Position numbers and translations under genes: made by a program. 64,000 nucleotides of DNA from Heptranchias perlo (Eukaryota): assembly GCF_035084215.1 (NCBI RefSeq), contig NC_090366.1, positions 13,640,001-13,704,000 of the forward strand, read 5' to 3'. This document shows positions 13,734 through 47,219 of the stretch, piece after piece. The first letter of the stretch is position 1. Every line of letters begins with the position of its first letter. The notes beneath the pieces were generated by a model. The model saw only the letters and a program-made list of their open reading frames with translations, had not been told where the DNA came from and did not search any database.

Positions 13734-13736
13734 AAA

Positions 13737-14200
13737 GTACTGAGGGAGCGCTGCACTGTCGGAGGGTCAGTACTGAGGGAGCGCTGCACTGTCGGAGGGT
13801 CAGTACTGAGGGAGCGCTGCACTGTCGGAGGGTCAGTACTGAGGGAGCGCTGCACTGTCGGAGGGTCAGTACTGAGGGAGCGCCGCACTGTCGGAGGGTC
13901 AGTACTGAGGGAGCGCTGCACTGTCGGAGGGTCAGTACTGAGGGAGCGCTGCACTGTCGGAGGGTCATTACTGAGGGAGCGCTGCACTGTCGGTGGGTCA
14001 GTACTGAGGGAGCGCCGCACTGTCAGAGGGTCAGCACTGAGGGAGCGCTGCACTATTGGAGTTGCCGTCTTTCAGATGAGAGGTTAAACCGAGGCCTCCG
14101 TCTGTCCCTCTCAGGCGGATGTAAAAGATCCCACGGCCACTATTGGATGAAGAGCAGGGGGAGTTCTCCTGGCACTGTAGAAATGCAAGTTCTGTCTTTT
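13737..14200 (+). repeat. 33-bp SINE-derived minisatellite (about 10 units) running into a Deu-SINE body
   Basis: Unit ctgagggagcgctgcactgtcggagggtcagta followed by SINE core gccgtctttcagatgagaggttaaaccgagg. B2 equivalent ~27397-27790 (about 8 units). Confidence 0.9.
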
Positions 14201-14396
14201 TTTCTCTTTCTTAAAGCCTTGTAACTCACTGCAGACAACCCATCATCCCACATAGAATCAAATTAGTCCGTGAAGACATTGTCTCGAAGCAGTTTTAATA
14301 TCTGCAGAGCTGTCGGGCAAGAGGTGAGTTCTCATTTACTTGTTTCTCTTTCAGACCTTGAGAGTGAGAAGTTGATGAAATATCTGAGAGTGGACA

Positions 14397-17300
14397 ATGA
14401 TCAGGAAACCTTACTTCCTCCTGTCACTTCTCCAAGGTAATATCATCGTCAGGTCGGAGATATTTATGGATAATAGTCGGTGCAAACGATCATTGTTATT
14501 GAGTTATGACGAGAGACCAAATTCAGCAGTGACTCAGTGTACTAACTCGCACCGAGTCCCGTTCACCCATCACCCCCTGTGCTCGCTGACCGACATTGGC
14601 TCCCGGTCCGGGAACACCTCGATTTTAAAATCCTCATCCTCGTGTTCAAATCCCTCCATGGCCTCCTCACTCCCCCCCCCACCCCCCCACATCACTGCAA
14701 CCTCCTCCAGCCCTACAACCCTCCGAGATCTCTGCGCTCCTCCAATTCTGGCCTCTTGCGCATCCCCCGATTTCCTTTGCTCCACCATTGGCGGCCGTGC
14801 CTTCAGCTGCTTGGACCCTATCTCTGGAATTCCCTCCCTAAACCTCTCCGCCTCTCTCTCCTCCTTTAAGACGCTCCTTAAAACCTATCTCTTTGACCAA
14901 GCTTTTGGTCACCTGTCCTAATATCTCCTTATGTGGCTCAGTGACAAATTGTGTCTGATAATCACTCCTGTGAAGCGCCTTGGGACGTTTTTTTTAAAGA
15001 CGTGATGTAAATGCAAGTTGTTGACATTGTTTGACTGGCCAGCGATCAACGCTGTTTTTTATTCATTCTTGGGATGTGGGCGTCGCTGGCGAGGCCGGCA
15101 TTTATTGCCCATCCCGAGTTACCCTTGAGAAGGTGGTGGTGAGCCGCCTTCTTGAACTGCTGCAGTCCGTGTGATGAAGATTCTCCCACAGTGCGAGTTC
15201 CAGGATATTGACCCAACGACGATGGAGGAACGGCCGATATATCTCCAACTCGGGATGTTGTGTGACTCGGAGGGGAACTTGGAGGTGATGAACAACCTCC
15301 AACATTGCTGCTCTCGTCCTTTTGGGTGGTAGAGGTCGCAGGGGAGGGAGATGCTGTCACTGTAACCTTGGGGAGTTCCATGTGTACCCTGTAGATGGTA
15401 CACACTGGAGCCACAGTAGGCCAATGATGGACGGGGGGGATGGTGGATCTCGAGTCCAGTGGATCTACGAGCCATCCCGTGCTAAATATCGATATTTTTT
15501 CTCCTCAGCTGTATTTTCACAAGAGTGGAAGGCCGACACCCCACGAGATGTGAGAGCACAGAAAGGTTTGTGTGCGCTGATTCCATGCCATTACAGTTAT
15601 CCATCGAATTTGGCAAACAAACATCGAGATGGAGTCTGGTTTCATACAGAGACGGGCGATTCTTTCGCCTTTCACTCCAAGGACCACGGACACGAGTCGG
15701 ACCGATTCAGACATCGGACCGGTCTGTCTGGAGACCTGAAAGATGGCGACTGTTCCCTGATTATAAACGACATCACAGCGGAAGATGCAGGTCCTTATAA
15801 TTTCAGGATAGAATTTGACAAGAAGAATAGCTTCAGCTACTTCCCAGCAACACAGCTTCACGTTTCCGGTAAGTGCTGTTTATAATTACTCATCAATTCA
15901 CTTTCAACAATCAATGGGAAATAATATAAACTATTAACACAAAACATTATAATAACGCAGCTTCTGATTATCAATAACCAGGCGATACCTTCCAGTTCAG
16001 TCTTAAAGCAACCGTTAATACTCACTTTATAAGCAATGATTAAATGCCTTGACTGTGTCCATTAATGTTATCAAGTTATCGGCACCCATCTATCTATCTA
16101 ATCATACTGAAAAATCTTAAATATCGAAGAAAGAAGGAACTTGCATTTCTATCGTGCCTTTCACAAACTCAGGATGTCCCAAAGCGCTTTACAGTTAAAT
16201 ACTTTTGAAGTGTGTTCACTGTTGTAATGTAGGAAACACGGCAGCCAATTCGCACACAGCAAGATCCCACAAACAGCAATGTGATGGATGACCAGATCAT
16301 CAGTGTTTTAGCGATGTTGCTTGAGTGATAAATATTGGCCCCAGGACACCGGGAGAACTTCTTGCTGTGGCCAGGATTTAATTTCACGTTTGCAGAGATC
16401 CCTGAGAAGGTTACAAGGCAGTGCTACCCGAGCTGGGATCTGCTCCTCCACTCCCACCCAGTATTGTCAATCCAAGGGTCTCAGAGTGAAAGTGCATCAA
16501 TCACATTGACAGGCACTCCGCCCAGTCCGAAAACAGGGAAGTCCTTTCTCTTGTGGGACTGTGGTTTATATTTGAACTGATTCTCCAAGTTATATTTAAC
16601 TAAAAGGATGTATTCTCTGCCAGATTTCACAGATAAACCCACAATATTCGCTCCTGAAATTATTGAGGGTAAATCTTGCAACATAACCTGCACCTTCAAC
16701 ACAACGTGCAGGGGAACAGCACCTGACTTAACCTGGGACAATCCCACTGATGTTCCCGGGTCTGTCTCAAACAGTGTAACTCAGCATGGTGGAACTCTGA
16801 CATATTCTTCTGTTCTGACTCTGGTCCCATCACCCAAACACTACGGGCAGACTCTCACCTGTAGAGTCAGCTTTCCATCTGTTTCATCGCAACGGACCCT
16901 CGCACTAACTGTTCAATGTAAGTACCAACATCTTTCCTGAATTAATTTTTTGGGTGCTTTTCTCCAAGGGCACACTCTGTTGCTTCAAGGGGTCAATGTT
17001 TCGTTCATCTAAAGATACAACACAAAGGACACCGACATCTTGGGTTTATACAGCGTCTTTAGTGTAGGGAAACATCCCAAGGCACTTCACAGAGGCAGCT
17101 GGAGAAAAAAGTACGGCAAGACAAAGAAGGAGATATTAGCTAAACTTTGATAAAACTCTGGTTAGGCTCCAGCTGGAGTATTGTGTCCAATTCTGGGCAC
17201 CGCACTTTAGGAAGGATGTCAAGGCCTTGGAGAGGGTGCAGAGGAGATTTACCAGAATGGTATCAGGGATGAGGGAGTTCAGTTATGTGGAGAGACTGGA

Positions 17301-19090
17301 GAAGCTGGGATTGTTCTCCTTAGAGCAGAGAAGGTTAAGGGGAGATTTAATCGAGGGGTTCAAAATCACGAATGGGTTTTGATAGAGTAAATAAGGAGAA
17401 GCTCTTTCCAGTGGCAGGAGGGTCGGTAACCAGAGGACACAGATTTAAGGTAATTGGCAAAAGAACCAGAGGGGGAGATGAGGAGAATGTTTTTTACGCA
17501 GCGAGTTGTTCTGATCTGGAATGCGCTGCCTGAAAGGGCGGTGGGAGCAGATTCAATAATAACTTTCAAAAGGGGAACTTTTAATGAGGAAAGATGCCTG
17601 GAAATGCATGCAGACAAAAGATACAGGGAGATGAAGCATGGGCTCCTGCTGTACGCTGTGTTTGCTGCGACAGGTTGCTGTTCTCTGTAAAATCAATAAA
17701 ATCCCTATTTGTCTTTAGACGCTCCGAGGAATCTCTCAATTACTTCTCTTGATACGATTAAAGATTCATCGATCAGTACAACAGAAGGGAATTCTACAGC
17801 CCTACACTGCTCTGTCGAAAGCTTCCCAGCTTCCAATCTGAGGTGGGAACATCTCGGAGTCACAGTGATCAGAAGCAGTTCCAACAACGAGGTGCGATTG
17901 GAGCTTCCTCACGTGACATCCAGGGTCGCTGGAGAGTATCGGTGTGTGGCGGAGAATGAACATGGGGCTGTGGAGAGTTCCATAACCATCACCGTGGAAC
18001 GTAAGTCTGGAGATACTTCCACATCTCGCTAAATACAAACAAATTAATATCGACGGGTGACTGTGGATTTTACAAAGTGAGTTTGGGCGTAACTTTGTTC
18101 GTAACAGTAACGGGTCGGATTTTCTTCACGGAATTGGCTTGGTGATACTGATCGATATTTAAATCCCACCATACTCGGAATGGTGGGCGCTTCATTCACT
18201 TTGAGCAGAGAGAGCAGCGACTGGTCGAGTCGATCGGTCTGGATCCCATTCTAATTTGGATCCAGAGTTCATGGAAATGGCAGCAGTTCTGTATCACTGA
18301 GGAATCATCAGGAGTTACATGTGCACAGATACACACACATGCCAATAGACACATACACACAAACATGTAAACAGTCACACACATGTACACAGGCACAGAC
18401 ACGTACAAACACACATGCACACACGTGCACACACTCTCATTCACACACACACAGATACACACACACACACACACCCAAGAGTTGCTATTCTCACCCCTTT
18501 TAATCCAGTTGCAACCGAGCCTGAACCTGGTCAGTCGGTCTTTGTTGCAGAGGGCTGGAGCTCAGGATCAGAGTGATGGAATATCGATCGCTTCCCCTGG
18601 GATCAGGGATCACTGTGATCACTCCTGGATTCCACAGTGAGATCACCAATCATAAAGCGACCTCTGGGGGGGACTGGGAATGTGGTTTTACATAAATATT
18701 ACAAATTACATATAAATATTACATATATAGACATTGAATATAGATATAATAGATAAATATTATAGAAAGTATTACATATTCAGATATTAAATATATAGAG
18801 ATTACATATACAGATATTACATATTCAGATATTAAATATATAGAGATCACATATACAGATATTACATATTCAGATATTAAATATGTGGAGATTACATATA
18901 TAAATATTACTTGTGTTGGGTAATCACTTCTCAAGGTCAGAATAAGTATAAGTTGATCAGAGCATCGTACTAAAACTGTGGTTGTTTTTACAGGGAGAGA
19001 AACACATGAATGGAAAGGAGCATTGCTTGGTGTTGGAATCACATTGAGTGGGACACTGGCCGGGTTCTTGATCTACATGTGCGTGCGAAA
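14397..19090 (+). CDS. Siglec-like (CD33-related type) receptor, copy B1: leader + V-set + 2 C2-set + TM
   Basis: Exons with AG/GT boundaries and phase-1 Ig junctions: leader 14397-14436 ([13 protein letters not shown]), V-set 15509-15868 ([21 protein letters not shown] with essential Arg), C2 16624-16917, C2 17719-18000, TM 18994-19090 ([23 protein letters not shown] then RK). No stops or frameshifts. C-terminus ambiguous (see findings). Confidence 0.88.
14540..15025 (+). mobile_element. L2 LINE 3' fragment
   Basis: Frame [27 protein letters not shown] resembles the L2 ORF2 C-terminus; tail aaatgcaagttgttg. Copies at ~28136-28605 and ~46260-46750. Confidence 0.7.
15055..15425 (-). mobile_element. 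CR1-Zenon-like LINE 3' fragment in the leader/V intron
   Basis: Same 3' end as 23930-25197, antisense. Copies at ~28640-29020 and ~45860-46225. Confidence 0.7.
17150..17576 (+). mobile_element. CR1 LINE 3' fragment
   Basis: Encodes [10 protein letters not shown]...[13 protein letters not shown] and FFTQRVV; longer in B2 (~30755-31280) and B3 (~44005-44535). Confidence 0.85.
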
Positions 19091-19152
19091 GTAAGTGTGA
19101 AGGTTTAACTTGTTTTTTTGAAAACTCTTGCTTCAATTTTCCCTCCTTAAAG

Positions 19153-19590
19153 GAAAGAAGGAACTTGCATTTCTATCGCGCCTTTCACAACCTCAGGACG
19201 TCGCAAAGCACTTTACAGCCAATGAAATACTTTTGAAGTGCAGTCACTGTTGTAAAGTAGGAAATGCGGCAGCCAATTTGCGCACAGCAAGATCCCACAA
19301 ACAGCAATGTGATAATGACCAGGTCATCTGTTTTTGTAGTGATGTTGTTTGATGGATGAATATTGGCCCCAGGACACCAGGGAGAACTCCCCCCTGCTCG
19401 TCTTCGAAATAGTGGCCGTGGGATCTTTTACACCCACCTGAGAGGGGCAGACGGGGGGCCTCGGTTTAACATCTCATCCCGAAGGACAGACAGTGCAGCG
19501 CCCCCTCAGTGCTAACACTGGGGAGTGTCGGCCTGGATTATAAAGCTGTTAGGGACATCCTGAGGTCACGAAAGGCGCTATATCAATGCA
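19153..19590 (-). mobile_element. Deu-domain SINE just downstream of the TM exon
   Basis: Antisense SINE starting with its tail gaaagaaggaacttgcatttc; copies at ~32876-33315 and ~41965-42407. Confidence 0.78.
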
Positions 19591-20605
19591 AGTCTTCATT
19601 ATTTAGCTGACAGCCAGAACCAAATGATATACTTACCCTGTACAGTACAGTAACATGCAGCCCAACGATCTCACTGTAAACACAGCGACTGCTAGAGAAA
19701 CAAGCAGGATATTTTGAGGCGAGCACACAAATTGGACTTTGACGTGATTTATTTCCAGCCGTGTACTTGGAATTAAGATTACGCTCTCTCCTGCCTGTTT
19801 CTTTCTTTTCTTCCACTTTTTCTGTCTCATTCGTCCTCTCCTTTCTCCTCTTATGTTCTCCCTCTCTCTCGCTCTCTCTCTCTCCCTCCCTCTTTCACGT
19901 TCTCCAGTGTCTCACATTTTCCAGGGAGTTCATGCTCTGGGGCCCAACTGTTCCTTCAGCACAGCCCTTGCTCTCTGGAATGAGCATTGAATCTAAACTC
20001 TACTTCAGCGGCTGCCCAGCTTTACACTGGAATAACGTCACAGTGCCAGGACACAAAGGGTTAAAAGTTTGCTTAAAACACGAGACAAAGGCCCTTCATT
20101 TGTGCAAAGTGCTATTTTCTCACTTCTCCCCCACTTCCTCATGTGACTCACAGTGACAGGCCAACCATTTCTAATTAAATACACAGGGGCCGCAACACAG
20201 GAAAAGGCCATTCAGCCCAAGCAGCGCGTGCTGGCATTTACTCTCCACACGAGCAGTCGGACAAGCCCTGGGTAAGTAAAGCAACGATTGCAATTCAATT
20301 CCACGACCTACGTCGCTCTTTGTTGGCGTTGTGACTTTGTAAAGAGACATTCCAATGATTTATGCCTTCCAAAGATTTCTACTTTTTGTTGCGATCTGGG
20401 TGTTGGGCTTAAGTCTATCGTACAGGACATGTTTGTGGTTCAAGGACGAGGGAAATCCAGAGACTTGAGACCATAATCCAAGCTGAAACTTCCAGTGCAG
20501 TACTGAGGGAGTGCTGCACTGTCGGAGGTGCCGCCTTTCGGATGAGACGTTAAATCGAGGGCCCCGTCTGCCCCTCTCAGGTGGGAGGTAAAAGATCCCA
20601 CGGCC

Positions 20606-21298
20606 AATATTTCAATATCAATGATCAAACCCAACATTGATCAATATCAATGATCAAACCCAACATTGATCAATATCAATGATCAAACCCAACATTGATC
20701 AATATCAATGATCAAACCCATCATTGATCAATATCAATGTTCAAACCCATCATTGATCAATATCAATGATCAAACCCATCATTGATCAATATCAATAATC
20801 AAACCCAACATTGATCAATATCAATGATCAAACCCATCATTGATCAATATCAATGATCAAACCCAACATTGATCAATATCAATGATCAAACCCAACATTG
20901 ATCAATATCAATGATCAAACCCATCATTGATCAATATCAATGATCAAACCCATCATTGATCAATATCAATGATCAAACCCATCATTGATCAACATCAATG
21001 ATCAAACCCAACATTGATCAATATCAATGATCAAACCCAACATTGATCAATATCAATGATCAAACCCAACATTGATCAATATCAATGATCAAACCCATCA
21101 TTGATCAACATCAATGATCAAACTCATCATTGATCAATATCAATGATCAAACCCATCATTGATCAATATCAATGATCAAACCCAACATTGATCAATATCA
21201 ATGATCAAACCCATCATTGATCAACATCAATGATCAAACTCATCATTGATCAATATCAATGATCAAACCCATCATTGATCAATATCAATGATCAAACC
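20606..21298. repeat. 29-bp quasi-palindromic minisatellite, about 24 units
   Basis: Unit atcaatgatcaaaccca(a/t)cattgatcaat; B2 ~34330-34847 (about 18 units), B3 ~40650-40960 (about 10-11 units). Confidence 0.95.
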
Positions 21299-21405
21299 CT
21301 GCACGGTTGGGCCTCAATTGCAGATCCAATGATCTAATTGGACTCAAACAAGCCAATCACAGATTGTGCCGATTGTCACACTGCTCATTTCCTTTTCTAT
21401 TACAG

Positions 21406-21522
21406 AAGGATGAGGAAGAGACGCTGGGAATCGAAACTGACCGTTACAGGAATGTATTTCAAGCCGATAATATCTACGAAAACTGCAATCTTGACGAGGA
21501 CTCTATTTATGCAAATGTATAA
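21406..21522 (+). CDS. Terminal cytoplasmic exon with ITIM-like SIYANV and NIYENC tyrosine motifs, B1
   Basis: Acceptor ttttctattacag at 21405; frame KDEEETLGIETDRYRNVFQADNIYENCNLDEDSIYANV*; SIYANV fits S/I/V/L-x-Y-x-x-I/V/L; AATAAA at 22354. In-frame linkage to the TM exon is not evident. Confidence 0.7.
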   Translation, partial: KDEEETLGIETDRYRNVFQADNIYENCNLDEDSIYANV

Positions 21523-23089
21523 TCTGAGCGAGAAGTAAAAACATGATCTCTGGGGACAACACAGAAGGCGAGAATCGAAACTCCCCTTTACCTTTCTAGA
21601 AACCACAGGACTTCACCCCAAAAATACAAGTTTTAAACTTCTTGACATAATCGAATGTAATTTTTTAAAGCTGATGTTATTTCACAAAGTTTGAGTGATA
21701 ATGGAGCCGAGATCATTCTCACTGGGTTTCATTTTGTCCGTCCTCCTTCAGGAATGTCTCTCACTGTTGGAGACATCCTTCTCTCCATTGTGATTATAAA
21801 TATCTTTCAGTATCGTTCGATATTCCACCAGGACATAACGGACAGTCTCAATCCCGTCTGTGTGTTTCAGTCACTTTTCTTCTTGTCATTTCACTTTCCT
21901 GTCTGTGAATGTTGACAGAATGGTCGTTACCAAGTGTAGAGTTCAGGGGAAGCAGGGGTCGAAGATATTTGGACCAGGGCCGATAGATAGAATTTACTCC
22001 CCATTTTACACTCATGCTTTCTTCCGCTTATTATTATAAAATGCTTTGATTTGATATTATCATTCATAGTCACACAGCAAAACTTACAGCAATTTAAGAA
22101 GTCGGGACATGGAGCAGGTTGGAGCAGGGAATTTCACTGCAGTACAGACCGAGGAACTGGGAGACGCAAAACGGAGGGCACACTGCCACCACTGGTGGGA
22201 GAGTGTAATTACAGCGTGACGTTTACATAGGCAGTTCCCATTATAAATGTGGATGGAGGAATTTTTGATGGGAAATGTTGTTTGTAGCTGTACGATTTTT
22301 AATATATCATATACAGATGAAACAGCTTGGATTGCAGAATGAACTATTGTTACAATAAACAACTATTTTAATTTTTCAGTCATTTAAAAAATATTTAAAA
22401 TACAATTAACACTCCCGCTCTTCCCCGATGGCTGAGTCGATGGATGTAATCAAGTGATGTGATACAAAATACAGAGACCAAGTTCTGAGTCTGTGTTCGG
22501 TTAAATGATCTCAATCAGGTACTTGGATCGAGGGGTGGGAAGATAAATCGGGCTCCTGCCCTTGATCTACAGCCGGTGGCTCCCTCTGTTAAGTGCGGGC
22601 TGCGTGAAGACAGAATTGTGTTCGAGGGATCTGCCCCCCATGGTCAATCAGCGCATTTGTCCGCTGACTGGTGCAAAATGGCTGCACCTCTGGAACTGGA
22701 CCCATGCATCAGTCAGTGCCTTAAGATCAGGAGAACTCTAACGTAACTAAGATTTACACAGAAAGTGGGTGGCTATTGTAGTCGAATATCGAGTGTTCAC
22801 TGGAATGGACACATGTCGACTCCAGTTGAGAATGAACCTCAGGGGAGAACTTTCTCTGGTTGCTATGTGTGTGTGGCATCATTAACAGAGCAGTCCTGGA
22901 GTGCGGCAGAAGTGGTGCTGCAGAATTTCTCGCCATTAAGTTACTGGTGGCCCCAACTCCACACACAACAGCCCACATTTCTGCATTGGGTGGCACTAAT
23001 TGGTGGCATGGCTCTGAGAGGTCACAAAGATTGGCTGTGGCACCAATAGAATTGGGTTGGCACCAGGATTGCTGTTCTTGGGGTCTTTG

Positions 23090-23370
23090 TTTTATTCATT
23101 CACGGGATGTGGGCGTCGCTGGCAAGCCCGGCATTTATTGCCCATCCCTAGTTGCCCCTTGAGAAGGTGGTGGTGAGCCGCCTTCTTGAACCGCTGCAGT
23201 CCGTGTGGTGACGGTTCTCCCACAGTGCTGTTCGGGAGGGAGTTCCAGGATTTTGACCCAGCGACGATGAAGGAACAGTCGATATATCCCCAAGTCGGGA
23301 TGGTGTGTGACTTTGTGGGGAATGTGGAGTTGATGGTGTTCCCATGCACCTGCTGCCCTTGTCCTTCTGG
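23090..23370 (-). mobile_element. CR1-Zenon-like LINE short 3' fragment (z)
   Basis: Antisense 3' end ttcaagaaggcggctcaccaccaccttctcaagggg...cccacatcccgtgaatgaataaa; mirror at ~38550-38832. Confidence 0.75.
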
Positions 23371-23929
23371 GTTGAGTGGGGTTAAGGAACATTTCCGAAG
23401 CAGAATAGTGTGAGCACCTGAGGAAGGAGCAAGCCTCCGAAACCATGTGAATTTCAAATAAAATTGCTGGACTGTAACTTGGTGTAAAATTGTTTACAAT
23501 TGTCAACCCCAGTCCATCACCGGCATCTCCGCATCACTGTTACATAGAAACAGGAGAAGGCCATTCAGCCCCTTGAGCCTGTTACACAGGAACAGGAGGA
23601 GGCCATTCAGCCCCTTGAGCCTGTTACAAAGGAACAGGAGGAGGCCATTCAGCCCCTCGATTAGCTCCCCCAAAACCGTTAGATCAGGGCTGATCTGTAC
23701 CTCAACTCCATTTACCTGCCTTTGCTCCACACCCTTGATTCCCTTACCCCACAAAAATCTATCGATCTCAATTTCAATTGACTCCCAGCATCCACAGCGT
23801 TTTGGGGGAGGGAGTTCCAGATTTCCACTCCCCTTTGTGTGAAAAAATGCTTCCTGATTTCACTCCAGAGTGGCCTGGCGCTAATATTAAGATTGTGGCC
23901 CCTTGTTCTGGATTCCCGTTAGAGATTAG

Positions 23930-26005: not shown

Positions 26006-27992
26006 CTTTCTCTCCTTCCTTCTTTCTTTCTCTCCATCTTTCTTTCTCTCTTTCTTCCTTTATCTCTTTCCTTTCATTCTCTCTTGACTTTGTTTCTCTC
26101 CTTCCTTTCTTTCTCTCCTTTCTATCTTTCTTTCTTCCTTTCTCTCCATTCTAACTTTCTCTCTTTCATTCTTTCTCTCCTTTCTATCTTTCTCTCCTTC
26201 TCTCTTTCTTTCTCTCCTTCCCTCTTTCCTTCTTTCATGGATTCAAGCCCCAACCCATGTCTTTGAACCATTAGGGGACCCGCTGTAACCAGCCTTTTGA
26301 AGGTTGACAGCCTGATTACATGCTTACCAAGTACAGTGTAGTAACATGCAGACAGACAGTCTCTCCGTTAACACAGCTACTGCTCGAGAAACAAGCAAGA
26401 CATTTCGAAGCTGGCACTCAAAGTGGCTTTACACATGATTTATTCACAACCGTGTTCTTGGAATTAAGATTGCACTCTCTCCTGTCTGTTTCTCTCTTTC
26501 CCTTCCTCTTTCCCTGTCTCATTCACCCTCTCCCTTCTCCTCTCATGCCCTCCCTCTCATCCTCTCTCTCTCTCTCTCCCCCTCTTTCACCAGTGTCTCA
26601 CATTCCCCCTTTCCTCTGGTCTCCTGAGACTGTGACAGTGAACATGACTTAGAGTGAGTGGGTGTGAGTGGAGGAAAGTGAGAGAAGGACAGTGAGTGTG
26701 TAAATCAGAGTGTGCGGGAGAGATTAAGGATAATGAGGGTGAGTGGGTGAGTGAGATTAAGGATAATGGTGCATGGGTGGGTGTGAGAGTGTGGGAGAAG
26801 ATTTATGAAACCTGAGAGGGTCTCTTTTAGTCTCATCCAAAAGACGGCACCTCTGACAGTGCGGCACTCCCTCGGTACTGGGAATGTCGGCCTGGATTAT
26901 GGGCTCAAATTTGTGGAGTGGGGACTTGAAATCTCTGGATTAACGTCACAGCGTCAGAACACAAAGGGTTAACAGTTTGCTTAAACCAAAAGACAAAGGT
27001 CCTTCATTTGTGCAAAGTGGGATTTTCTCACTTGTTTCTCACTTCCTCATGTGACTCACAGTGACAGACCAACCATTTCTAATTAAATACACAGAGTCAC
27101 AACTCAGGAAAAGGCCATTCGGACCAAGCAGTGCGTGCTGGCATTTACTCTCCACACGAGCAGTCGGACAGGTCCTGGGTAAGTAAAGCAACGATTGTAA
27201 TTAACTTCCACGACCAATGTCGCTCTTTGTTGGTGTCGCGACTTTGTAAAGAGAGATTTATGCCGTCTAAAGATCTCTACTTTTTATTGAGATGGGGGTG
27301 TAGAGCTGAAGTCTGTCGAACACGACATCTTTCCAGTTCAAGGACTAGGGAAATCCAGGGATTTGAGCCCATAATCCAGGGCAACACTCCCAGAGTCAGT
27401 ACAGAGGGAGCGCTGCACTGTCGGAGGGTCAGTACTGAGGGAGCGCTGCACTGTCGGAGGGTCAGTACTGAGGGAGCGCTGCACTGTCGGAGGGTCAGTA
27501 CTGAGGGAGCGCTGCACTGTCGGAGGGTCAGTACTGAGGGAGTGCTGCACTGTTGGAGGGTCAGTACTGAGGGAGCGCCGCACTGTCGGAGGGCCAGTAC
27601 TGAGGGAGCGCTGCCCTGTCGGAGGGTCAGTACTGAGGGAGCGCTGCACTATTGGAGGTGCCATCTTTCGGACGAGACGTTAAACCGAGGCCCCCGTCTG
27701 TCCCTCTCAGACGGACGTAAAAGATCCCACGGCCACTATTGGATGAAGAGCAGGGGGAGTTCTCCTGGCACTGTCGAAATGCAAGTTCTGTCTTTTTTTC
27801 TCTTTCTTAAAGCCTTGTAACTCACTGCAGACAACCCATCATCCCACATAGAATCAAATTAGTCCGTGAAGACATTGTCCAGAAGCAGTTTTAATATCTG
27901 CAGAGCTGTCGGGCAAGAGGTGAGTTCTCATTTACTTGTTTCTCTTTCAGACCTTGAGAGTGAGAAGTTGATGAACTATCTGAGAGTGGACA

Positions 27993-30900
27993 ATGATCAG
28001 GAAACCTTACTTCCTCCTGTCACTTCTCCAAGGTAATATCATCGTCAGGTCGGAGATATTTATGGAAAATAGTCGGTGCAGAGGATCATTGTTATTGAGT
28101 TATGACGAGGGACCAAATTCAGCAGTGACTCAGTGTACTAACTCGCACCGAGTCCCGTTCACCCATCACCCCCTGTGCTCGTTGACCTACATTGGCTCCC
28201 GGTCCGGGAACACCTCGATTTTAAAACCATCATCCTCGTGTTCAAATCCGTCCATGGTATCCTCTCCTCCCTATCTCTGTAACCTCCTCCAGCCCCTACA
28301 ACCCTCTGAGATCTCTGCGCTCCTCCATTTCTGGGCTCTTTCGCATCTGCAATTTCCTTTGCTCCACCATTGGCGGCCGTGCCTTCAGCTGCCTGGGCCC
28401 TAAGCTCTGGAATTCCCTCCCTAAACCTCTCCGCCTCTCTCTCCTCCTTTATGACGCTCCTTAAAACCTACCTCTTTGACCAAGCTTTTGGTCACCTGTC
28501 CTAATATCTCCTTATGTGGCCCGGTGTCAAATTGTGTCTGATAATCGCTCCTGTGAAGCATCTTGGGACGTTTTTTTTAATGACATGATGTAAATGCAAG
28601 TTGCTGACATTGTTTGACTGGCCAGCGATCAACGCTGTTTTTTATTCATTCATGGGATGTGGGCGTCGCTGGCAAGGCCGGCATTTATTGTCCATCCTTA
28701 GTTGTCCCTTGAGAAGGTGGTGGTGAGCCGCCTTCTTGAACCGCTGCAGTCCGTGTGGTGAAGGTTCTCCCACAGTGCTGTTAAGAAGGGAGTTCCAAGA
28801 TATTGACCCAGTGACGATGGAGGAACGGCCGATATATCTCCAACTCGGGATGGTGTGTGACTCGGAGGGGAACCTGGAGGTGATGAACAACCTCCAACAT
28901 TGCTGCTCTTGACCTTTTGGGTGGTAGAGGTCGCAGGGGAGGGAGATGCTGTCACTGTAACCTTGGGGAGTTCCATGTGTACCCTGTAGATGGTACACAC
29001 TGGAGCCACAGTAGGCCAGTGATGGAAGGGGGGGATGGTGGATCTCGAGTCCAGTGGATCTACGAGCCATCCAGTGCTAAATATCGATATTTTTTCTCCT
29101 CAGCTGTATTGTCACAAGAGTGGAAGGCCGACACCCCACGAGATGTGAGAGCACAGAAAGGTTTGTGTGCGCTGATTCCATGCCATTACAGTTATCCATC
29201 GAATTTGGCAAACAAACAGCGAGATGGAGTCTGGTTTAACACTGAGAAAGAGAGACCATGGGCTCCCCTAGCCTTTCACTCCAAGGACCACGGACACGAG
29301 TCGGACCGATTCAGACATCGGACCGGTCTGTCTGGAGACCTGAAAGATGGCGACTGTTCCCTGATTATAAACAACATCACAGCGGAAGATGCAGGTCCTT
29401 ATTTTTTCAGAGTAGAATTTGGCAACGGGGAAAACTTCAACTATTACCCAGCAACACAGCTTCACGTTTCCGGTAAGTGCTGTTTATAATTACTCATCAA
29501 TTCACTTTCAACAGTCAATGGGAAATAATATAAACTATTAACACAAAACATTATAATAACGCAGCTTCTGATTATCAATAACCAGGCGATACCTTCCAGT
29601 TCAGTCTTAAAGCAACCGTTAATACTCACTTTATAAGCAATGATTAAATGCCTTGACTGTGTCCATTAATGTTATCAAGTTATCGGCACCCATCTATCTA
29701 TCTAATCATACTGAAAAATCTTAAATATCGAAGAAAGAAGGAACTTGCATTTCTATCGTGCCTTTCACAAACTCAGGATGTCCCAAAGCGCTTTACAGTT
29801 AAATACTTTTGAAGTGTGTTCACTGTTGTAATGTAGGAAACACGGCAGCCAATTCGCACACAGCAAGATCCCACAAACAGCAATGTGATGGATGACCAGA
29901 TCATCAGTGTTTTAGCGATGTTGCTTGAGTGATAAATATTGGCCCCAGGACACCGGGAGAACTTCTTGCTGTGGCCAGGATTTAATTTCACGTTTGCAGA
30001 GATCCCTGAGAAGGTTACAAGGCAGTGTTACCCGAGCTGGGATCTGCTCCTCCACTCCCACCCAGTATTGTCAATCCAAGGGTCTCAGAGTGAAAGTGCA
30101 TCAATCACATTGACAGGCACTCCGCCCAGTCCGAAAACAGGGAAGTCCTTTCTCTTGTGGGACTGTGGTTTATATTTGAACTGATTCTCCAAGTTATATT
30201 TAACTAAAAGGATGTATTCTCTGCCAGATTTCACAGATAAACCCACAATATTCGCTCCTGAAATTATTGAGGGTAAATCTTGCAACATAACCTGCACCTT
30301 CAACACAACGTGCAGGGGAACAGCACCTGACTTAACCTGGGACAATCCCACTGATGTTCCTGGGTCTGTCTCAAACAGTGTAACTCAGCATGGTGGAACT
30401 CTGACATATTCTTCTGTTCTGACTCTGGTCCCATCACCCAAACACTACGGGCAGACTCTCACCTGTAGAGTCAGCTTCCCATCTGTTTCATCGCAACGGA
30501 CCCTCGCACTAACTGTTCAATGTAAGTACCAACATCTTTCCTGAATTAATTTTTTGGGTGCTTTTCTCCAAGGGCACACTCTGTTGCTTCAAGGGGTCAG
30601 TGTTTCGTTCATCTAAAGATACAACACAAAGGACACCGACATCTTGGGTTTATACAGCGTCTTTAGCGTAGGGAAACATCCCAAGGCACTTCACAGAGGC
30701 AGCTGGAGAAAAAAGTACGGCAAGACAAAGAAGGAGATATTAGCTAAACTTTGATAAAACTCTGGTTAGGCTCCAGCTGGAGTATTGTGTCCAATTCTGG
30801 GCACCGCACTTTAGGAAGGATGTCAAGGCCTTGGAGAGGGTGCAGAGGAGATTTACCAGAATGGTATCAGGGATGAGGGACTTCAGTTATGTGGAGAGAC

Positions 30901-32813
30901 TGGAGAAGCTGGGATTGTTCTCCTTAGAGCAGAGAAGGTTAAGGGGAGATTTAATGGAGGGGTTCAAAATCATGAAGGGTTTTGATAGAGTAAATAAGGA
31001 GAAACTGTTTCCAGTGGCAGGAGGGTCGGTAACCAGAGGACACAGATTTAAGGTAATTGGCAAAAGAACCAGAGGGGGAGATGAGGAGAATTTTTTTACG
31101 CAGCGAGTTGTGATGATCTGGAATGCGCTGCCTGAAAGGGCGGTGGAAGCAGATTGAATAATAACTTTCAAAAGGGGAATTGGATAAATACTTGAAAAGG
31201 ACAAATTTACAGGGGCTACGGGGAAAGAGCAGGGGAATGGGATTAATTGGATAGATCTTTCGAAGAGCAGGCACATTATAAAAGTCGGTACAGGAACTTT
31301 TAATGAGGAAAGATGCCTGGAAATGCATGCAGACAAAAGATACAGGGAGATGAAGCATGGGCTCCTGCTGTACGCTGTGTTTGCTGCGACAGGTTGCTGT
31401 TCTCTGTAAAATCAATAAAAACTCTATTTGTCTTTAGACGCTCCGAGGAATCTCTCAATTACTTCTCTTGATACGATTAAAGATTCATCGATCAGTATAA
31501 CAGAAGGGAATTCTACAGCCCTACACTGCTCTGTCGAAAGCTTCCCAGCTTCCAATCTGAGGTGGGAACATCTCGGAGTCACAGTGAACAGAAGCAGTTC
31601 CAACAACGAGGTGCGATTGGAGCTTCCTCACGTGACATCCAGGGTCGCTGGAGAGTATCGGTGTGTGGCGGAGAATGAACATGGGGCTGTGGAGAGTTCC
31701 ATAACCATCACCGTGGAACGTGAGTCTGGAGATACTTCCACATCTCGCTAAATACAAACAAATTAATATCGACGGGTGACTGTGGATTTTACAAAGTGAG
31801 TTTGGGCGTAACTTTGTTCGTAACAGTAACGGGTCGGATTTTCTTCACGGAATTGGCTTGGTGATACTGATCGATATTTAAATCCCACCATACTCGGAAT
31901 GGTGGGCGCTTCATTCACTTTGAGCAGAGAGAGCAGCGACTGGTCGAGTCGATCGGTCTGGATCCCATTATAATTTGGATCCAGAGTTCATGGAAATGGC
32001 AGCAGTTCTGTATCACTGAGGAATCATCAGGAGTTACATGTGCACAGATACACACACATGCCAATAGACACATACACACAAACATGTAAACAGTCACACA
32101 CATGTACACAGGCACAGACACGTACAAACACACATGCACAGGCACACACGTGCACACACTCTCATTCACACACACACAGATACACACACACACACACCCA
32201 AGAGTTGCTATTCTCACCCCTTTTAATCCAGTTGCAACCGAGCCTGAACCTGGTCAGTCGGTCTTTGTTGCAGAGGGCTGGAGCTCAGGATCAGAGTGAT
32301 GGAATATCGATCGCTTCCTCTGGGATCAGGGATCACTGTGATCACTCCTGGATTCCACAGTGAGATCACCAATCATAAAGCGACCTCTGGGGGGGACTGG
32401 GAATGTGGTTTTACATAAATATTACAAATTACATATAAATATTACATATATAGACATTGAATATAGATATAATAGATAAATATTATAGAAAATATTACAT
32501 ATTCAGATATTAAATATATAGAGATTACATATACAGATATTACATATTCAGATATTAAATATATAGAGATCACATATACAGATATTACATATTCAGATAT
32601 TAAATATGTGGAGATTACATATATAAATATTACTTGTGTTGGGTAATCACTTCTCAAGGTCAGAATAAGTATAAGTTGATCAGAGCATCGTACTAAAACT
32701 GTGGTTGTTTTTACAGGGAGAGAAACACATGAATGGAAAGGAGCATTGCTTGGTGTTGGAATCACATTGAGTGGGACACTGGCCGGGTTCTTGATCTACA
32801 TGTGCGTGCGAAA
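27993..32813 (+). CDS. Siglec-like receptor, copy B2 (direct duplicate of B1)
   Basis: Leader 27993-28032, V-set 29104-29472 (GPYFFRVEF), C2 30228-30521, C2 31438-31719, TM 32717-32813; canonical splice sites and open frames. Confidence 0.88.
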
Positions 32814-34953
32814 GTAAGTGTGAAGGTTTAACTTGTTTTTTTGAAAACTCTTGCTTCAATTTTCCCTCCTTAAAGGAAAGAAGGAACTTGCATTTCTATC
32901 GCGCCTTTCACAACCTCAGGACGCCGCAAAGCACTTTACAGCCAATGAAATACTTTCGAAGTGCAGTCACTGTTGTAAAGTAGGAAACGCGGCAGCCAAT
33001 TTGCGCACAGCAAGATCCCACAAACAGCAATGTGATAATGACCAGGTCATCTGTTTTTGTAGTGATGTTGTTTGATGGATGAATATTGGCCCCAGGACAC
33101 TGGGGAGAACTCCCCCTGCTCGTCTTCGAAATAGTGGCCGTGGGATCTTTTACACCCACCTGAGAGGGGCAGACGGGGGGCCTCGGTTTAACATCTCATC
33201 CCGAAGGACAGACAGTGCAGCGCCCCCTCAGTGCTAACACTGGGGAGTGTCGGCCTGGATTATAAAGCTGTTAGGGACATCCTGAGGTCACGAAAGGCGC
33301 TATATCAATGCAAGTCTTCATTATTTAGCTGACAGCCAGAACCAAATGATAGACTGACCCAGTACAGTACAGTAACATGCAGCCCAACGATCTCACTGCA
33401 AACACAGCGACTGCTAGAGAAACAAGCAAGATATTTTGAGGCGAGCACACAAATTGGACTTTGACGTGATTTATTTCCAGCCGTGTACTTGGAATTAAGA
33501 TTACGCTCTCTCCTGCCTGTTTCTTTCTTTTCTTCCACTTTTTCTGTCTCATTCGTCCTCTCCTTTCTCCTCTTATGTTCTCCCTCTCTCTCGCTCTCTC
33601 TTTCTCCCTCCCTCTTTCACGTTCTCCAGTGTCTCACATTTTCCAGGGAGTTCATGCTCTGGGGCCCAACTGTTCCTTCAGCACAGCCCTTGCTCTCTGG
33701 AATGAGCATTGAATCTAAACTCGACTTCAGCGGCTGCCCAGCTTTACACTGGAATAACGTCACAGTGCCAGGACACAAAGGGTTAAAAGTTTGCTTAAAA
33801 CACGAGACAAAGGCCCTTCATTTGTGCAAAGTGCTATTTTCTCACTTCTCCCCCACTTCCTCATGTGACTCACAGTGACAGGCCAACCATTTCTAATTAA
33901 ATACACAGGGGCCGCAACACAGGAAAAGGCCATTCAGCCCAAGCAGCGCGTGCTGGCATTTACTCTCCACACGAGCAGTCGGACAAGCCCTGGGTAAGTA
34001 AAGCAACGATTGCAATTCACTTCCACGACCTACGTCGCTCTTTGTTGGCGTTGTGACTTTGTAAAGAGACATTCCAATGATTTATGCCTTCCAAAGATTT
34101 CTACTTTTTGTTGCGATCTGGGTGTAGGGCTTAAGTCTATCGTACAGGACATGTTTGTGGTTCAAGGACGAGGGAAATCCAGGGACTTGAGACCATAATC
34201 CAAGCTGAAACTTCCAGTGCAGTACTGAGGGAGTGCTGCACTGTCGGAGGTGCCGCCTTTCGGATGAGACGTTAAATCGAGGGCCCCGTCTGCCCCTCTC
34301 AGGTGGGAGGTAAAAGATCCCACGGCCAATATTTCAATATCAATGATCAAACCCAACATTGATCAATATCAATGATCAAACCCAACATTGATCAATATCA
34401 ATGATCAAACCCATCATTGATCAATATCAATGTTCAAACCCATCATTGATCAATATCAATGTTCAAACCCATCATTGATCAATATCAATGTTCAAACCCA
34501 TCATTGATCAATATCAATGATCAAACCCAACATTGATCAATATCAATGATCAAACCCATCATTGATCAATATCAATGTTCAAACCCATCATTGATCAATA
34601 TCAATGTTCAAACCCATCATTGATCAATATCAATGTTCAAACCCATCATTGATCAATATCAATGATCAAACCCAACATTGATCAATATCAATGATCAAAC
34701 CCAACATTGATCAATATCAATGATCAAACCCATCATTGATCAATATCAATGATCAAACCCATCATTGATCAACATCAATGATCAAACCCAACATTGATCA
34801 ATATCAATGATCAAACCCATCATTGATCAATATCAATGATCAAACCCTGCACGGTTGGGCCTCAATTGCAGATCCAATGATCTAATTGGACTCAAACAAG
34901 CCAATCACAGATTGTGCCGATTGTCACACTGCTCATTTCCTTTTCTATTACAG

Positions 34954-35070
34954 AAGGATGAGGAAGAGACGCTGGGAATCGAAACTGACCGTTACAGGAA
35001 TGTATTTCAAGCCGATAATATCTACGAAAACTGCAATCTTGACGAGGACTCTATTTATGCAAATGTATAA
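34954..35070 (+). CDS. Terminal ITIM-like exon, B2
   Basis: Same translation as 21406-21522. Confidence 0.7.
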   Translation, partial: KDEEETLGIETDRYRNVFQADNIYENCNLDEDSIYANV

Positions 35071-36662
35071 TCTGAGCGAGAAGTAAAAACATGATCTCTG
35101 GGGACAACACAGAAGGCGAGAATCGAAACTCCCCTTTACCTTTCTAGAAACCACAGGACTTCACCCCAAAAAATACAAGTTTTAGACTTCTTGACATAAT
35201 CGAATGTAATTTTTTAAAGCTGATGTTATTTCACAAAGTTTGAGTGATAATGGAGCCGAGATCATTCTCACTGGGTTTCATTTTGTCCGTCCTCCTTCAG
35301 GAATGTCTCTCACTGTTGGAGACATCCTTCTCTCCATTGTGATTATAAATATCTTTCAGTATCGTTCGATATTCCACCAGGACATAACGGACAGTCTCAA
35401 TCCCGTCTGTGTGTTTCAGTCACTTTTCTTCTTGTCATTTCACTTTCCTGTCTGTGAATGTTGACAGAATGGTCGTTACCAAGTGTAGAGTTCAGGGGAA
35501 GCAGGGGTCGAAGATATTTGGACCAGGGCCGATAGATGGAATTTACTCCCCATTTTACACTCATGCTTTCTTCCGCTTATTATTATAAAATGCTTTGATT
35601 TTATATTATCATTCATAGTCACACAGCAAAACTTACAGCAATTTAGGATGTCGGGACATGGAGCAGGTTGGAGCAGGGAATTTCTCTGCAGTACAGACCG
35701 AGGAACTGGGAGACGCAAAACGGAGGGCACACCGCCACCACTGGTGGGAGAGTGTAATTACAGTGTGACGTTTACATAGGCAGTTCCCATTATAAATGTG
35801 GATGGAGGAATTTTTGATGGGAAATGTTGTTTGTAGCTGTACGATTTTTAACATATATACAGATGAAACAGCTTGGATTGCAGAATGAACTATTGTTACA
35901 ATAAACAACTATTTTAATTTTTCAGTCGTTTAAAAGATATTTAAAATACACTTAGCACTCCCTCCCGCTCTTCCCCGATGGCTTAGTCGATGGATGTAAT
36001 CAAGTGATGTGATACAAAATACAGAGACCAAGTTCTGAGTCTCTGTGTTAAATGATCTCAATCAGGTACTTGGATCGAGGGATGGGAAGATAAATCGGGC
36101 TCCTGCCCTTAATCTGCAGCCGGTGGCTCCCTCTGTTCAGTGCAGGCTGAGTGAAGACAGAATTGTGTTCGAGGGATCTACCCCCCATGGTCAATCAGCC
36201 CGTTTGTCCGCTGACTGGTGCAAAATGGCCACCTGGGTCAGGCACCGTGCTTTGCTGCACCGCTGGAACTGGACCCATGCATCAGTCAGTGCCTTAAGAA
36301 CAGGAGAATTCTAACGTAACTAAGATTTACACAGAAACTGGGTGGCTATTGTAGTCGAATATCGAGTGTTCACTGGAATGGACACATGTCGACTCCAGTT
36401 GAGAATGAACCTCAGGGGAGAACTTTCTCTGGTTGCTATGTGTGTGTGGCATCATTAACAGAGCAGTCCTGGAGTGCGGCAGAAGTGGTGCTGCAGAATT
36501 TCTATCCATTAAGTTACTGGTGGCCCCAACTCCATACACAACAGCCCACATTTCTGCATTGGGTGGCACTAATTGGTGGCATGGCTCTGAGAGGTCACAA
36601 AGATTGGCTGTGGCACCAATAGAATTGGGTTGGCACCAGGATTGCTGTTCTTGGGGTCTTTG

Positions 36663-37925
36663 TTTTATTCATTCATGGGATGTGGGCGTCGCTGGCGAGG
36701 CCGGCATTTATTGCCCATCCCTAATTGCCCCTTGAGAAGGTGGTGGTGAGCCGCCTTCTTGAACCGCTGCAGTCCGTGTGGTGAAGGTTCTCCCACAGTG
36801 CTGTTAGGAAGGGAGTTCCAGGATTTTGACCCAGCGACGATGAAGGAACGGCGATATATTTCCAAGTCGGGATGGTGTGTGACTTGGAGGGGAACGTGCA
36901 GGTGGTGTTGTCCCCATGTGCCTGCTGCTCTTGTCCTTCTAGGTGGTAGAGGTCGCGGGTTCGGGACGTGCTGTCGAAGAAGCCTTGGCGAGTTGCTGCA
37001 GTGCATCCTGTGGATGGTACACACTGCAGCCACTGTGCGCCGGTGCTGAAGGGAGTGAATGTTTCGGGTGGTGGATGGGGTGCCAATCAAGCGGGCTGCT
37101 TTGTCCTGAATGGTGTCGAGCTTCTTGAGTGTTGTTGGAGCTGCACTCATCCAGGCAAGTGGAGAGTATTCCATCACACTCCTGACTTGTGCCTTGTAGA
37201 TGGTGGAAAGTCTTTGGGGAGTCAGGAGGTGAGTCACTCGCCGCAGAATACCCAGCCTCTGACCTGCTCTTGCAGCCACAGCATTTATATGGCTGGTCCA
37301 GTTAAGTTTCTGGTCAATGGTTACCCCCAGGATGTTGATGTTGGGGGATTCGGTGATGGTAATGCCGTTGAATGTCAAGGGGAGGTGGTTAGACTCTCTT
37401 GTTGGATATGGCCATTGCCTGGCACTTGTCTGGCGCGAATGTTGCTTGCCACTTATGAGCCCAAGCCTGGATGTCGTCCAGGTCTTGCTGCATGCGGGCT
37501 CGGACTGCTTCATTATCTGAGGGGCTGCGAATGGAACTGAACACTGTGCAATCATCAGTGAACATCCCCATTTCTGACCTTATGATGGAGGGAAGGTCAT
37601 TGATGAAGCAGCTGAAGATGGTTGGGCCTAGGACACTGCCCTGAGGAACTCCTGCAACAATGTCCTGGGGCTGAGATGTTTGGCCTCCAACAACCACTAC
37701 CATCTTCCTTTGTGCTTGGTATGACTCCAGCCACTGGAGAGTTTTCCCCCTGATTCCCATTGACTTCAATTTCACGAGGGCTCCTTGGTGCCACACTCGG
37801 TCAAATGCTGCCTTGATGTCAAGGGCAGTCACTCTCACCTCACCTCTGGAATTCAGCTCTTTTGTCCATCTTTGGACCAAGGCTGTAATGAGGTCTGGAG
37901 CCGAGTGGTCCTGGCGGAACCCAAT
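36663..37925 (-). mobile_element. Inverted copy of the Zenon-like LINE at the inversion junction
   Basis: ORFs 37389..38078 and 36665..37555 mirror 23778..25149; CR1 tail with about four 42-bp repeats at ~38200-38357. Confidence 0.85.
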
Positions 37926-40427: not shown

Positions 40428-40544
40428 TTATACATTTGCATAAATAGAGTCCTCGTCAAGATTGCAGTTTTCGTAGATATTATCGGCTTGAAATACATTC
40501 CTGTAACGGTCAGTTTCGATTCCCAGCGTCTCTTCCTCATCCTT
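40428..40544 (-). CDS. Terminal ITIM-like exon, B3
   Basis: Same translation as the B1 and B2 terminal exons, on the minus strand. Confidence 0.7.
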   Translation of the reverse strand, partial: KDEEETLGIETDRYRNVFQADNIYENCNLDEDSIYANV

Positions 40545-46885: not shown

Positions 46886-47219
46886 TGTCCACTCTCAGAT
46901 ATTTCATCAACTTCTCACTCTCAAGGTCTGAAAGAGAAACAAGTAAATGAGAACTCACCTCTTGCCCGACAGCTCTGCAGATATTAAAACTGCTTCTAGA
47001 CAATGTCTTCACGGACTAATTTGATTCTATGTGTGATGATGGGTTGTCTGCAGTGAGTTACAAGGCTTTAAGAAAGAGAAAAAAAGACAGAACTTGCATT
47101 TCTACAGTGCCAGGACAACTCCCCCTGCTCTTCATCCAATAGTGGCCGTGGGATCTTTCACATCCGCCTCAGAGGGACAGACGGGGGCCTCGGTTTAACC
47201 TCTCATCCGAAAGATGGCA

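Follow-up and report, generated by a model that had tools for sequence, protein, structure and literature searches.

Divergence between near-identical Siglec genes of the shark Heptranchias perlo is concentrated in two short segments at the predicted glycan-binding face

The 64-kb stretch of Heptranchias perlo DNA analyzed here (the window; contig NC_090366.1, positions 13,640,001 to 13,704,000, numbered from its first letter) contains three intact, transcribed Siglec copies that bear an immunoreceptor tyrosine-based inhibitory motif (ITIM), B1 and B2 on the forward strand and B3 on the reverse strand. Among the three copies, introns, repeats and remaining exons are 96–99% identical, and the divergence of B1 is concentrated in two short patches of the exon that encodes the V-set immunoglobulin (Ig) domain. 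We infer that both segments predate by far the scaffold on which they sit and that they belong to loop types circulating in the elasmobranch Siglec family. The best reading of the data is that gene conversion exchanged or preserved old loop cassettes on a scaffold that was duplicated or homogenized recently.

The gene units were compared in a three-way MAFFT alignment with 6671 ungapped columns, in which B1 and B2 differ at 133 positions and B3 differs from B1 and from B2 at 219 positions each. Sixty-six substitutions are private to B1, and 24 of them lie within the 77 columns of patches 1 and 2 (Table 1); in the V exon alone, these patches hold 24 of the 26 B1-private substitutions in 77 of 362 columns. 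Patch 1 of B1 is also three codons shorter than that of B2 and B3. Because the patch borders were picked after the data had been seen, more weight is carried by a border-free scan, in which the maximum was 13 B1-private sites per 45 columns (permutation mean 3.4, maximum 7), a value reached in 0 of 20000 permutations. The differences are thus not evenly spread, and the concentration in two V-domain patches that had been claimed in a preliminary description of this DNA stands. Between the patches (15676–15798, 123 columns), a single site is private to B1 (15769) and a single site to B3 (15705), and the former marks the single codon (D/N) at which the frameworks of B1 and B2 differ there, as had been described. 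After removal of the patch sites, the B1-private run was not significant (311 of 2000 permutations); foreign sequence is therefore confined to the patches and does not extend to the entire V exon. The protein encoded by the first C2-set exon (C2a) is 100% identical in B1, B2 and B3, both in tblastn and by site counts (pN 0, with one or two synonymous differences; pN and pS are the proportions of nonsynonymous and synonymous differences). This agrees with the preliminary description, whose patch amino-acid strings for the three copies, including the three-residue indel, were reproduced letter for letter by the translations; the synonymous changes that it placed within the patches, AGG/AGA in the Arg codon and TAC/TAT, are present in the alignment.

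Both patch types are found in contigs from four public sequencing runs of one sample; these contigs drop variants. The GT..AG joints between leader and V, V and C2a, and C2a and the second C2-set exon (C2b) are present in contigs of runs X1, X3 and X7, and none of them is present in the DNA-type run X2 of the same sample. X1, X3 and X7 thus behave like RNA, and their joints confirm the exon borders. The B1-type patch 1 occurs exactly in an RNA-type contig of X1, X1 and X3 each have contigs in which C2a follows the B1-type patch 2 by splicing, and the B2/B3-type patch 2 is found spliced in X7. One RNA-type contig of X3 (depth 21.6 of 57.7) carries a T>A change at 15664, within patch 1, which would replace Phe with Ile, the usual residue of the family at this position; this change was not seen in the DNA-type contigs.

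An indication of the age of the patches comes from synonymous sites. The 15 codons of patch 2 show 14 differences, of which 2 are synonymous and 12 nonsynonymous, with pS and pN both equal to 0.31, and all other coding parts have a pS of 0–0.035 and a pN of 0–0.019; the synonymous excess in patch 2 has a P of ∼0.005. Positive selection acting on new mutations would raise pN only, so the elevation of both values points to an older origin. The pS of 0.71 obtained for patch 1 was not used, as the MAFFT placement of the indel is not codon-true.

As judged by sequence and predicted structure, B1, B2 and B3 appear to be recent copies of one inhibitory (ITIM) Siglec gene, for which sialic-acid binding is predicted. 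The V exon of B1 matches the Pfam families V-set (3.1e-11) and Ig_CD22 (1.7e-6). The 16 best sequence matches of the V domain in the PDB are all Siglecs, with sialoadhesin (Siglec-1) first (E 3e-17) and Siglec-5, Siglec-10, MAG, CD33, Siglec-8 and Siglec-7 as the next relatives of solved structure. An AlphaFold model of the B1 V domain, calculated from a 26-sequence alignment, has a predicted local distance difference test (pLDDT) value of 89.8, and its best Foldseek match is sialoadhesin with 3′-sialyllactose (template modeling score 0.87–0.90, root mean square deviation 1.7 Å); among the matches listed, ranks 1–46 are all Siglecs. The cysteine pattern of Siglecs comprises a B–E intrasheet pair and an extra cysteine before strand B. 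Residues C22, C27 and C82 would correspond to this pattern, and in the family alignment C82 is invariant and C22 and C27 are nearly so. All copies contain two C2-set, transmembrane, juxtamembrane and ITIM exons, which is the architecture of Siglecs. The strand F Arg (R100 in B1 and R103 in B2 and B3), near-invariant in the 26-sequence alignment, aligns with Arg97 of sialoadhesin, and each of the three copies has W7 in line with Trp2; the position of Trp106 is occupied in all three by Phe, which is aromatic but not Trp. Arg97 of sialoadhesin makes the key salt bridge (PMC13086771).

Both patches map to the predicted binding face. In the B1 model, strand C comprises residues 40–46, C′ residues 52–56, F residues 95–103 and G residues 107–119. 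Patch 1 (residues 46–53) would accordingly form the end of strand C, the C–C′ loop and the start of C′, and patch 2 (residues 97–112) would form strand F, the F–G turn and the start of strand G. In the B2 V model (pLDDT 88.4), the unstructured C–C′ loop has 10 residues (46–55), compared with 5 in B1, and strand G is interrupted at residues 114–117. The pocket residues listed for Siglec-1 are Trp2, Tyr44, Arg97, Arg105, Trp106, Leu107 and Val109 (PMC13086771), and their equivalents in B1, taken from the sequence alignment, are W7, E48, R100, S108, F109, S110 and F112. B1 departs from B2/B3 at four of these seven positions (P = 0.016 for at least 4 of 7, given 21 differing positions in 123), and all copies share the W, R and F. 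The C–C′ loop has been implicated in the ligand specificity of Siglec-7, whose essential Arg is on strand F (PMC7250851). The placement of the patches at predicted ligand-contact loops, as proposed in the preliminary description, thus holds by homology rather than by a ligand complex: it derives from the sequence alignment to sialoadhesin and the secondary structure of the models, not from ligand distances. The anchor positions, i.e. the Trp on strand A, the Arg on strand F and the aromatic residue on strand G, are kept in the alignment, so far as homology allows them to be assigned. By the same homology, the sialic-acid anchor looks conserved, and the residues predicted to meet the rest of the glycan vary.

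The same distribution of variability is seen across the family. A HMMER search against 1.84 billion representatives returned 1137 proteins at E ≤0.001, and the close family recovered in word-based searches consists of automatically annotated Siglec, CD33-like and MAG-like models from many sharks and rays. Variability was determined for 35 V domains with ≥55% framework identity to B2, taken from 218 V-domain matches. The two most variable 8-residue windows among them start at residues 44–51 and 106–109, which are the two patches, and the mean entropy is 1.88 for the patches and 1.16 for the framework (Mann–Whitney P 0.0004). A second set consisted of 138 domains with scores ≥90 bits, 123 after removal of identical ones, from which the H. 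perlo models were dropped since they are identical to B1 and B3. In 81 foreign pairs with a framework identity of ≥0.88, the difference rate was 0.085 in the framework, 0.42 in patch 1 and 0.25 in patch 2, and for 46 of these 81 pairs the rate in the patches was more than threefold that in the framework. For example, the Carcharodon models P0165 and P0166 differ at 3/96 framework positions, 7/11 positions of patch 1 and 6/16 of patch 2, and the corresponding values for Heterodontus P0181 and P0188 are 5/96, 6/10 and 4/16. The earlier proposal of variation on a fixed scaffold resembling that of complementarity-determining regions (CDRs) is therefore valid for the whole family, in the variable windows as well as in near-identical pairs.

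Individual loop types recur in distant species. Of the 120 foreign domains, 14 carry the patch 1 motif of B2/B3 (P-W-A-P); they come from Carcharodon, Cetorhinus, Mustelus, two Scyliorhinus species, Pristiophorus and the sawfish Pristis, and this loop type thus spans lamniform, carcharhiniform and sawshark proteins and one sawfish. It occurs mostly with one patch 2 ending (11 of 14; Fisher 1e-10, uncorrected for kinship), with three exceptions each way. For B1, patch 2 is closest to one Scyliorhinus canicula domain and two Mustelus domains. When framework columns are compared, B1 is nearest to B3 (98%) and B2 (97%); its identity to foreign domains is at most 78%, and none of the 120 is closer. 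The patches give a different picture: 65 of the 120 foreign domains in patch 1 and 64 in patch 2 are more like B1 than B2 is, and 102 and 92, respectively, are more like B2 than B1 is. A tree inferred by quick search from the 96 framework columns alone, with 60 rows that represent eight species, joined B1, B2 and B3 at 99% support. On this tree, the patch 1 type with its 14 carriers requires 11 changes (shuffled mean 12.7; 55 of 500 shuffles as low), and a single clade for the 14 carriers was rejected on framework columns by the approximately unbiased (AU) test (difference in log-likelihood 105.5, p-AU 0.0004). This rejection, together with the conflict between nearest relatives, indicates that framework and patch histories differ.

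Variable sites along the gene units form a mosaic. The copy that stands apart (the odd copy) is B2 upstream of ∼15250, with 29 of the 48 sites between 14100 and 15250, B1 at ∼15258–15910 and B3 downstream; runs of B2-odd and of B3-odd sites were each matched in 0 of 2000 permutations. Exchange is therefore active at this locus, which is a recombination or conversion mosaic. In ∼0.7 kb around the V exon (∼15258–15910 in B1, 28853–29514 in B2 and 46023–45362 in B3), B2 and B3 are the nearest pair; upstream the nearest pair is B1/B3 and downstream B1/B2. This ∼0.7-kb stretch, V exon included, resembles a tract converted between B2 and B3, which are inverted relative to each other. The reads add further combinations: a DNA-type contig covering 15667–16183 has the B1 patch 2 with B2/B3 states at 15769 and 15910, another contig (15293–15623) has B2/B3 states at 15424, 15432 and 15516 and B1 states at the remaining private sites, and RNA-type contigs with the B1 patch 2 also show A at 15769. 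A second B1-type form, an allele or a further copy, thus exists, in which B1-type patches are combined with a B2/B3 framework. Contig depth (17.1 for the B1-type patch 2 contig and 23.6 for a stretch shared by the three copies) is too rough a measure to indicate a further B1-type copy.

It had been suggested that the patches reflect either conversion from a more distant paralog or protection of the loops from homogenization, and as a class these explanations are supported by the synonymous divergence of patch 2, the loop types shared across shark orders and the conflict with the framework tree. Divergence of the segments, synonymous divergence included, is far above that of the flanks, and the phylogenies are incongruent, as is characteristic of gene conversion. 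Within this class, the patches probably, though by no means certainly, arose by short-tract import into a recently duplicated copy and were kept by selection for glycan specificity. Import is favored because the 10-kb units share their introns and repeats at 96–99% identity. Mechanistically, ectopic, non-reciprocal gene conversion would have replaced at most 200 bp in one copy, either as one tract over both patches from a paralog with a near-identical framework or as two shorter tracts. Selection for different glycan specificities would then have kept the replaced loops. The changed copy could be B1 or the ancestor of B2 and B3, in either direction. The expected outcome would be one inhibitory signaling module coupled to different extended-glycan specificities, like CDRs on a fixed framework.

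Several points weigh against this reading. A donor was sought at every position of the window on both strands with both patches of B1 and of B2, and none was found above chance: the best foreign window matches had 16/39 and 23/50 mismatches, the same as shuffled patches. Outside the window, the V exon by itself yielded only 2 short Carcharodon matches among proteins, and searches with the full-length models (100 and 56 matches over the V region), which covered lengths of 0.55–1.75 times the query, returned from H. perlo only P0168 and P0184. As these two models are the genes described here, the searches contained no additional H. perlo relative. Import of one tract from a typical paralog should have brought framework differences along, of which just 15769 lies between the patches, and some read contigs have the B1-type patch 2 without even this difference. 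The near-absence of framework differences between the patches implies that the donor must share the scaffold, and the line between import and a model of protected loops is thereby blurred. The synonymous evidence amounts to 2 synonymous differences in 6.5 sites, and patch 1 is not alignable codon by codon. In the family comparison, the 81 pairs are not independent and include isoforms, cross-species comparisons and fused gene models. Matches of the B1 patch 1 in other species are weak (best score 14), and the framework tree is poorly resolved, with 6 of 57 branches starred and the starred ones forcing only at least 2 changes.

The reverse polarity would make B1 and B2/B3 descendants of old paralogs with different loops, in which everything else was homogenized by repeated long-tract conversion or unequal crossing-over. 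Frameworks that group by taxon and patch types that cross taxa are the classic signature of concerted evolution, and both the ∼0.7 kb over which B2 is closest to B3 and the read contigs with the B1-type patch 2 on a framework with B2/B3 states at 15769 and 15910 fit this history. We nevertheless hold it to be rather unlikely: the 10-kb unit, with introns and interspersed repeats at 96–99% identity, looks like a recent segmental duplication, and holes of 33 and 44 bp would be left only by several tracts all ending at the patch borders. For the patches to have escaped, selection would have to remove converted loops, or dense mismatches would have to stop heteroduplex formation at the patch edges. 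Conversion at this locus does not by itself bypass the patches, as they lie within the apparent B2/B3 tract.

Explanations that involve no transfer fare worse. Point mutations and one indel accumulated under strong positive selection after duplication could be expected at ligand-contact positions, where 12 of the 14 differences of patch 2 are nonsynonymous, and the first Ig domain evolves rapidly in mammalian Siglecs (PMC6288428). Such de novo divergence is nonetheless improbable. The synonymous divergence of patch 2 is ∼10 times the background or more, and ∼31% divergence in 77 columns on a background of 1–2% would require more than 20 fixed mutations in two spots; the 11-residue loop of B2/B3, moreover, nearly equals loops of sawshark, catshark and sawfish, which would not be expected from convergence. 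A local mutational process without homologous donor, such as clustered multi-nucleotide mutation, template switching or germ-line hypermutation of the deaminase type, would produce tight clusters like those observed, with doublets and triplets at 15799–15800, 15807–15808 and 15822–15824, and tandem mutations are known in shark lymphocytes (PMC5931798). We regard this as very improbable, as the window has no template for either patch type, the resulting loops match pre-existing types of the family, and the coincidence of the clusters with two family-wide hypervariable windows argues for selection or transfer over a random hit. Finally, a chimeric B1 V exon produced by mis-assembly or collapsed haplotypes is of almost negligible probability: all read support does come from one sample, possibly the assembled one, and Logan contigs differ from the window at 15424, 15432, 15516, 15769 and 15910, but B1-type patches are found in separate DNA-type and RNA-type contigs, spliced to neighboring exons, NCBI gene models of the species hold both V types, and assemblies of other species have the same two-patch pattern. 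As a separate candidate for the origin of patch 1, a compensated frameshift was dismissed after informal inspection by eye, since the B2 patch read in other frames is nothing like B1.

The reading of old cassettes on a young scaffold can be extended to the whole family. It is possible, though less likely than not, that elasmobranch Siglecs constitute a germline combinatorial repertoire with co-adapted C–C′ and F–G cassettes that are older than the shark–ray split. Movement of these cassettes among paralogs by short-tract conversion, onto scaffolds homogenized in each species, is put forward with the same reserve.

The arrangement of the locus is summarized in Table 1. Comparison of the window with itself gave identities of 95.7–98.7% for units B1 and B2 and 95.7–97.9% for B1 and the reverse complement of B3. 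All three units are enclosed by a large palindrome, whose arms (1–13279 and 59818–49083) are ∼97% alike. Each copy consists of a leader, a V-set exon, two C2-set exons, transmembrane and juxtamembrane exons and a last exon with a canonical ITIM. Translations of the V exons are exactly equal to the V domains of two NCBI H. perlo models, P0168 (B3) and P0184 (B1), for both of which PF08205 is listed. The genes are thus already in the automatic annotation, as 'Siglec-13'; the automatic NCBI names of relatives are inconsistent and include Siglec-8/10/12/13, CD33-like, MAG-like and CD22-like.

Table 1. Gene units, exons and patches of the three Siglec copies in the window
Feature	Positions	Strand	Basis and details
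Gene unit B1	13736..23415	+	∼10 kb; self-comparison of window
B1 leader exon	14397..14436	+	Open reading frame start 14397; joint 14434>15507 (cut +2); matches P0168 N-terminus
B1 V-set exon, phase 1-1	15509..15868	+	Pfam; joints on both sides; translation equals P0184 V domain
B1 patch 1	15643..15675	+	11 B1-private substitutions and 9-bp indel in 33 columns; exon residues 46–53
B1 patch 2	15799..15842	+	13 B1-private substitutions in 44 columns; Arg codon 15805–15807
B1 first C2-set exon (C2a)	16624..16917	+	tblastn 100%; joints 15867>16623 and 16917>17719
B1 second C2-set exon (C2b)	17719..18000	+	Joint 16917>17719; 3′ end inferred from GT at 18001; tblastn of P0184
B1 transmembrane exon	18996..19091 (ends approximate)	+	tblastn of P0168/P0184, 97–100%
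B1 juxtamembrane exon	20179–20271	+	P0184 compared with window
B1 last coding exon, C-terminal ITIM S-I-Y-A-N-V	21406..21522	+	Open reading frame; 100% identical in three copies
Gene unit B2	27392..36944	+	Self-comparison of window
B2 V-set exon	29104..29472	+	Patch 1 29238–29279; patch 2 29403–29446
Gene unit B3, inverted	38508..47546	-	Self-comparison of window
B3 V-set exon	45404..45772	-	Patch 1 45597–45638; patch 2 45430–45473; translation equals P0168 V domain

Several further features of the locus were observed. The model P0184 (window 14397–35067) joins V, C2a and C2b of B1 to C2b, transmembrane exon and tail of B2 and is a read-through model over two genes; B1 has its own transmembrane, juxtamembrane and ITIM exons (matched at 18996–19091, 20179–20271 and 21406–21519) despite this read-through into B2. 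An insert of ∼370 bp is present in B1 (16126–16499) and B2 (29730–30103) and absent from B3, and read contigs over it have a depth of >100,000, as expected of an interspersed repeat. In the DNA-type run, the contig depth of C2b (17727–17987) is ∼4 times that of C2a (96.8 versus 23.6), which fits many C2b-like exons elsewhere in the genome. Each palindrome arm carries one distant V-set exon, designated A (1973–2326 on the reverse and 57480–57833 on the forward strand), with 28% protein identity to the B copies and Tyr at the position of the Siglec Arg, i.e. an Arg-less partner gene, with a C2 exon at 60961–61260. With this identity and without the Arg, the A exons were rejected as patch donors. 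Just 5′ of each unit lies a diverged copy of the juxtamembrane exon (13650–13829, 27101–27178 and 48713–48790; 50–88% protein identity), adjoining a 33-bp tandem repeat. Tandem arrays with periods of ∼32, 29 and 33 bp are located within and between the units (8689–12510, 20604–21299, 34326–34847, 40651–40961, 47220–48503 and 49843–50761), and their lengths vary among the copies.

Siglecs are vertebrate sensors of sialic-acid 'self' patterns. In mammals, the Siglec binding domain evolves fast, and the origin of new specificities has mostly been inferred from comparison between species. The present locus is a natural experiment in this respect, with three expressed genes that have the same tail, C2 domains and V framework and differ in ∼20 residues around the predicted, conserved sialic-acid anchor. 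A literature search found no paper on shark Siglecs; the only shark paper among its results that contains the word, on the whale shark genome, names Siglec once, in a list of gene families.

The closest parallels are found among the mammalian CD33-related Siglecs, in which change is likewise concentrated in the sialic-acid-binding domain and the next C2 domain is conserved (PMC6288428). The C–C′ loop directs specificity in Siglec-7 and Siglec-9. A published account implicates this loop in ligand specificity and places the essential Arg on strand F (PMC7250851). In contrast to the CD33-related Siglecs, the pattern in H. perlo is seen within one genome, in copies that are ∼97–99% identical including introns, and it consists of two patches of 33 and 44 bp whose types cross elasmobranch orders; the best sequence match among solved structures is Siglec-1. 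A second parallel is provided by the pairs Siglec-5/-14 and Siglec-11/-16, in which ectopic gene conversion between neighboring Siglecs shapes the ectodomain, as it appears to do here (PMC6288428; PMC5701461). The polarity is opposite, however: the primate pairs keep their binding domains alike and differ in their tails (inhibitory versus activating), whereas the tails of B1, B2 and B3 are identical and inhibitory and the binding loops differ.

At the level of sequence, sialoadhesin is the nearest comparison. It is a long, tail-less adhesion molecule. The shark copies share with it (1QFO) the conserved equivalents of Trp2 and Arg97, and B1 also shares the Y-N-F-R motif. Unlike sialoadhesin, to which they are ∼32% identical, the shark proteins have three Ig domains and an ITIM tail, with Phe at the position of Trp106, and the equivalents of Tyr44, Arg105, Leu107 and Val109 vary among the shark copies.

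Outside the Siglecs, segmental exchange or patchwork at binding sites is known from the peptide-binding regions of MHC, from KIR and Ly49, from the teleost NITRs and from pseudogene conversion of the chicken Ig V gene. These families, which are not Siglecs or glycan receptors, resemble the present case in having hypervariable binding segments on a conserved Ig or lectin scaffold and motif lineages that occur across species; the chicken case is somatic, whereas the shark case is germline. The family-wide data suggest that loop types have persisted over hundreds of millions of years of scaffold turnover, a form of retention better known from MHC and natural killer (NK) receptors than from lectins. 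If the repertoire reading is true, elasmobranch Siglecs would represent a germline, glycan-directed counterpart of CDR grafting, in which one inhibitory module samples many sialoglycan specificities.

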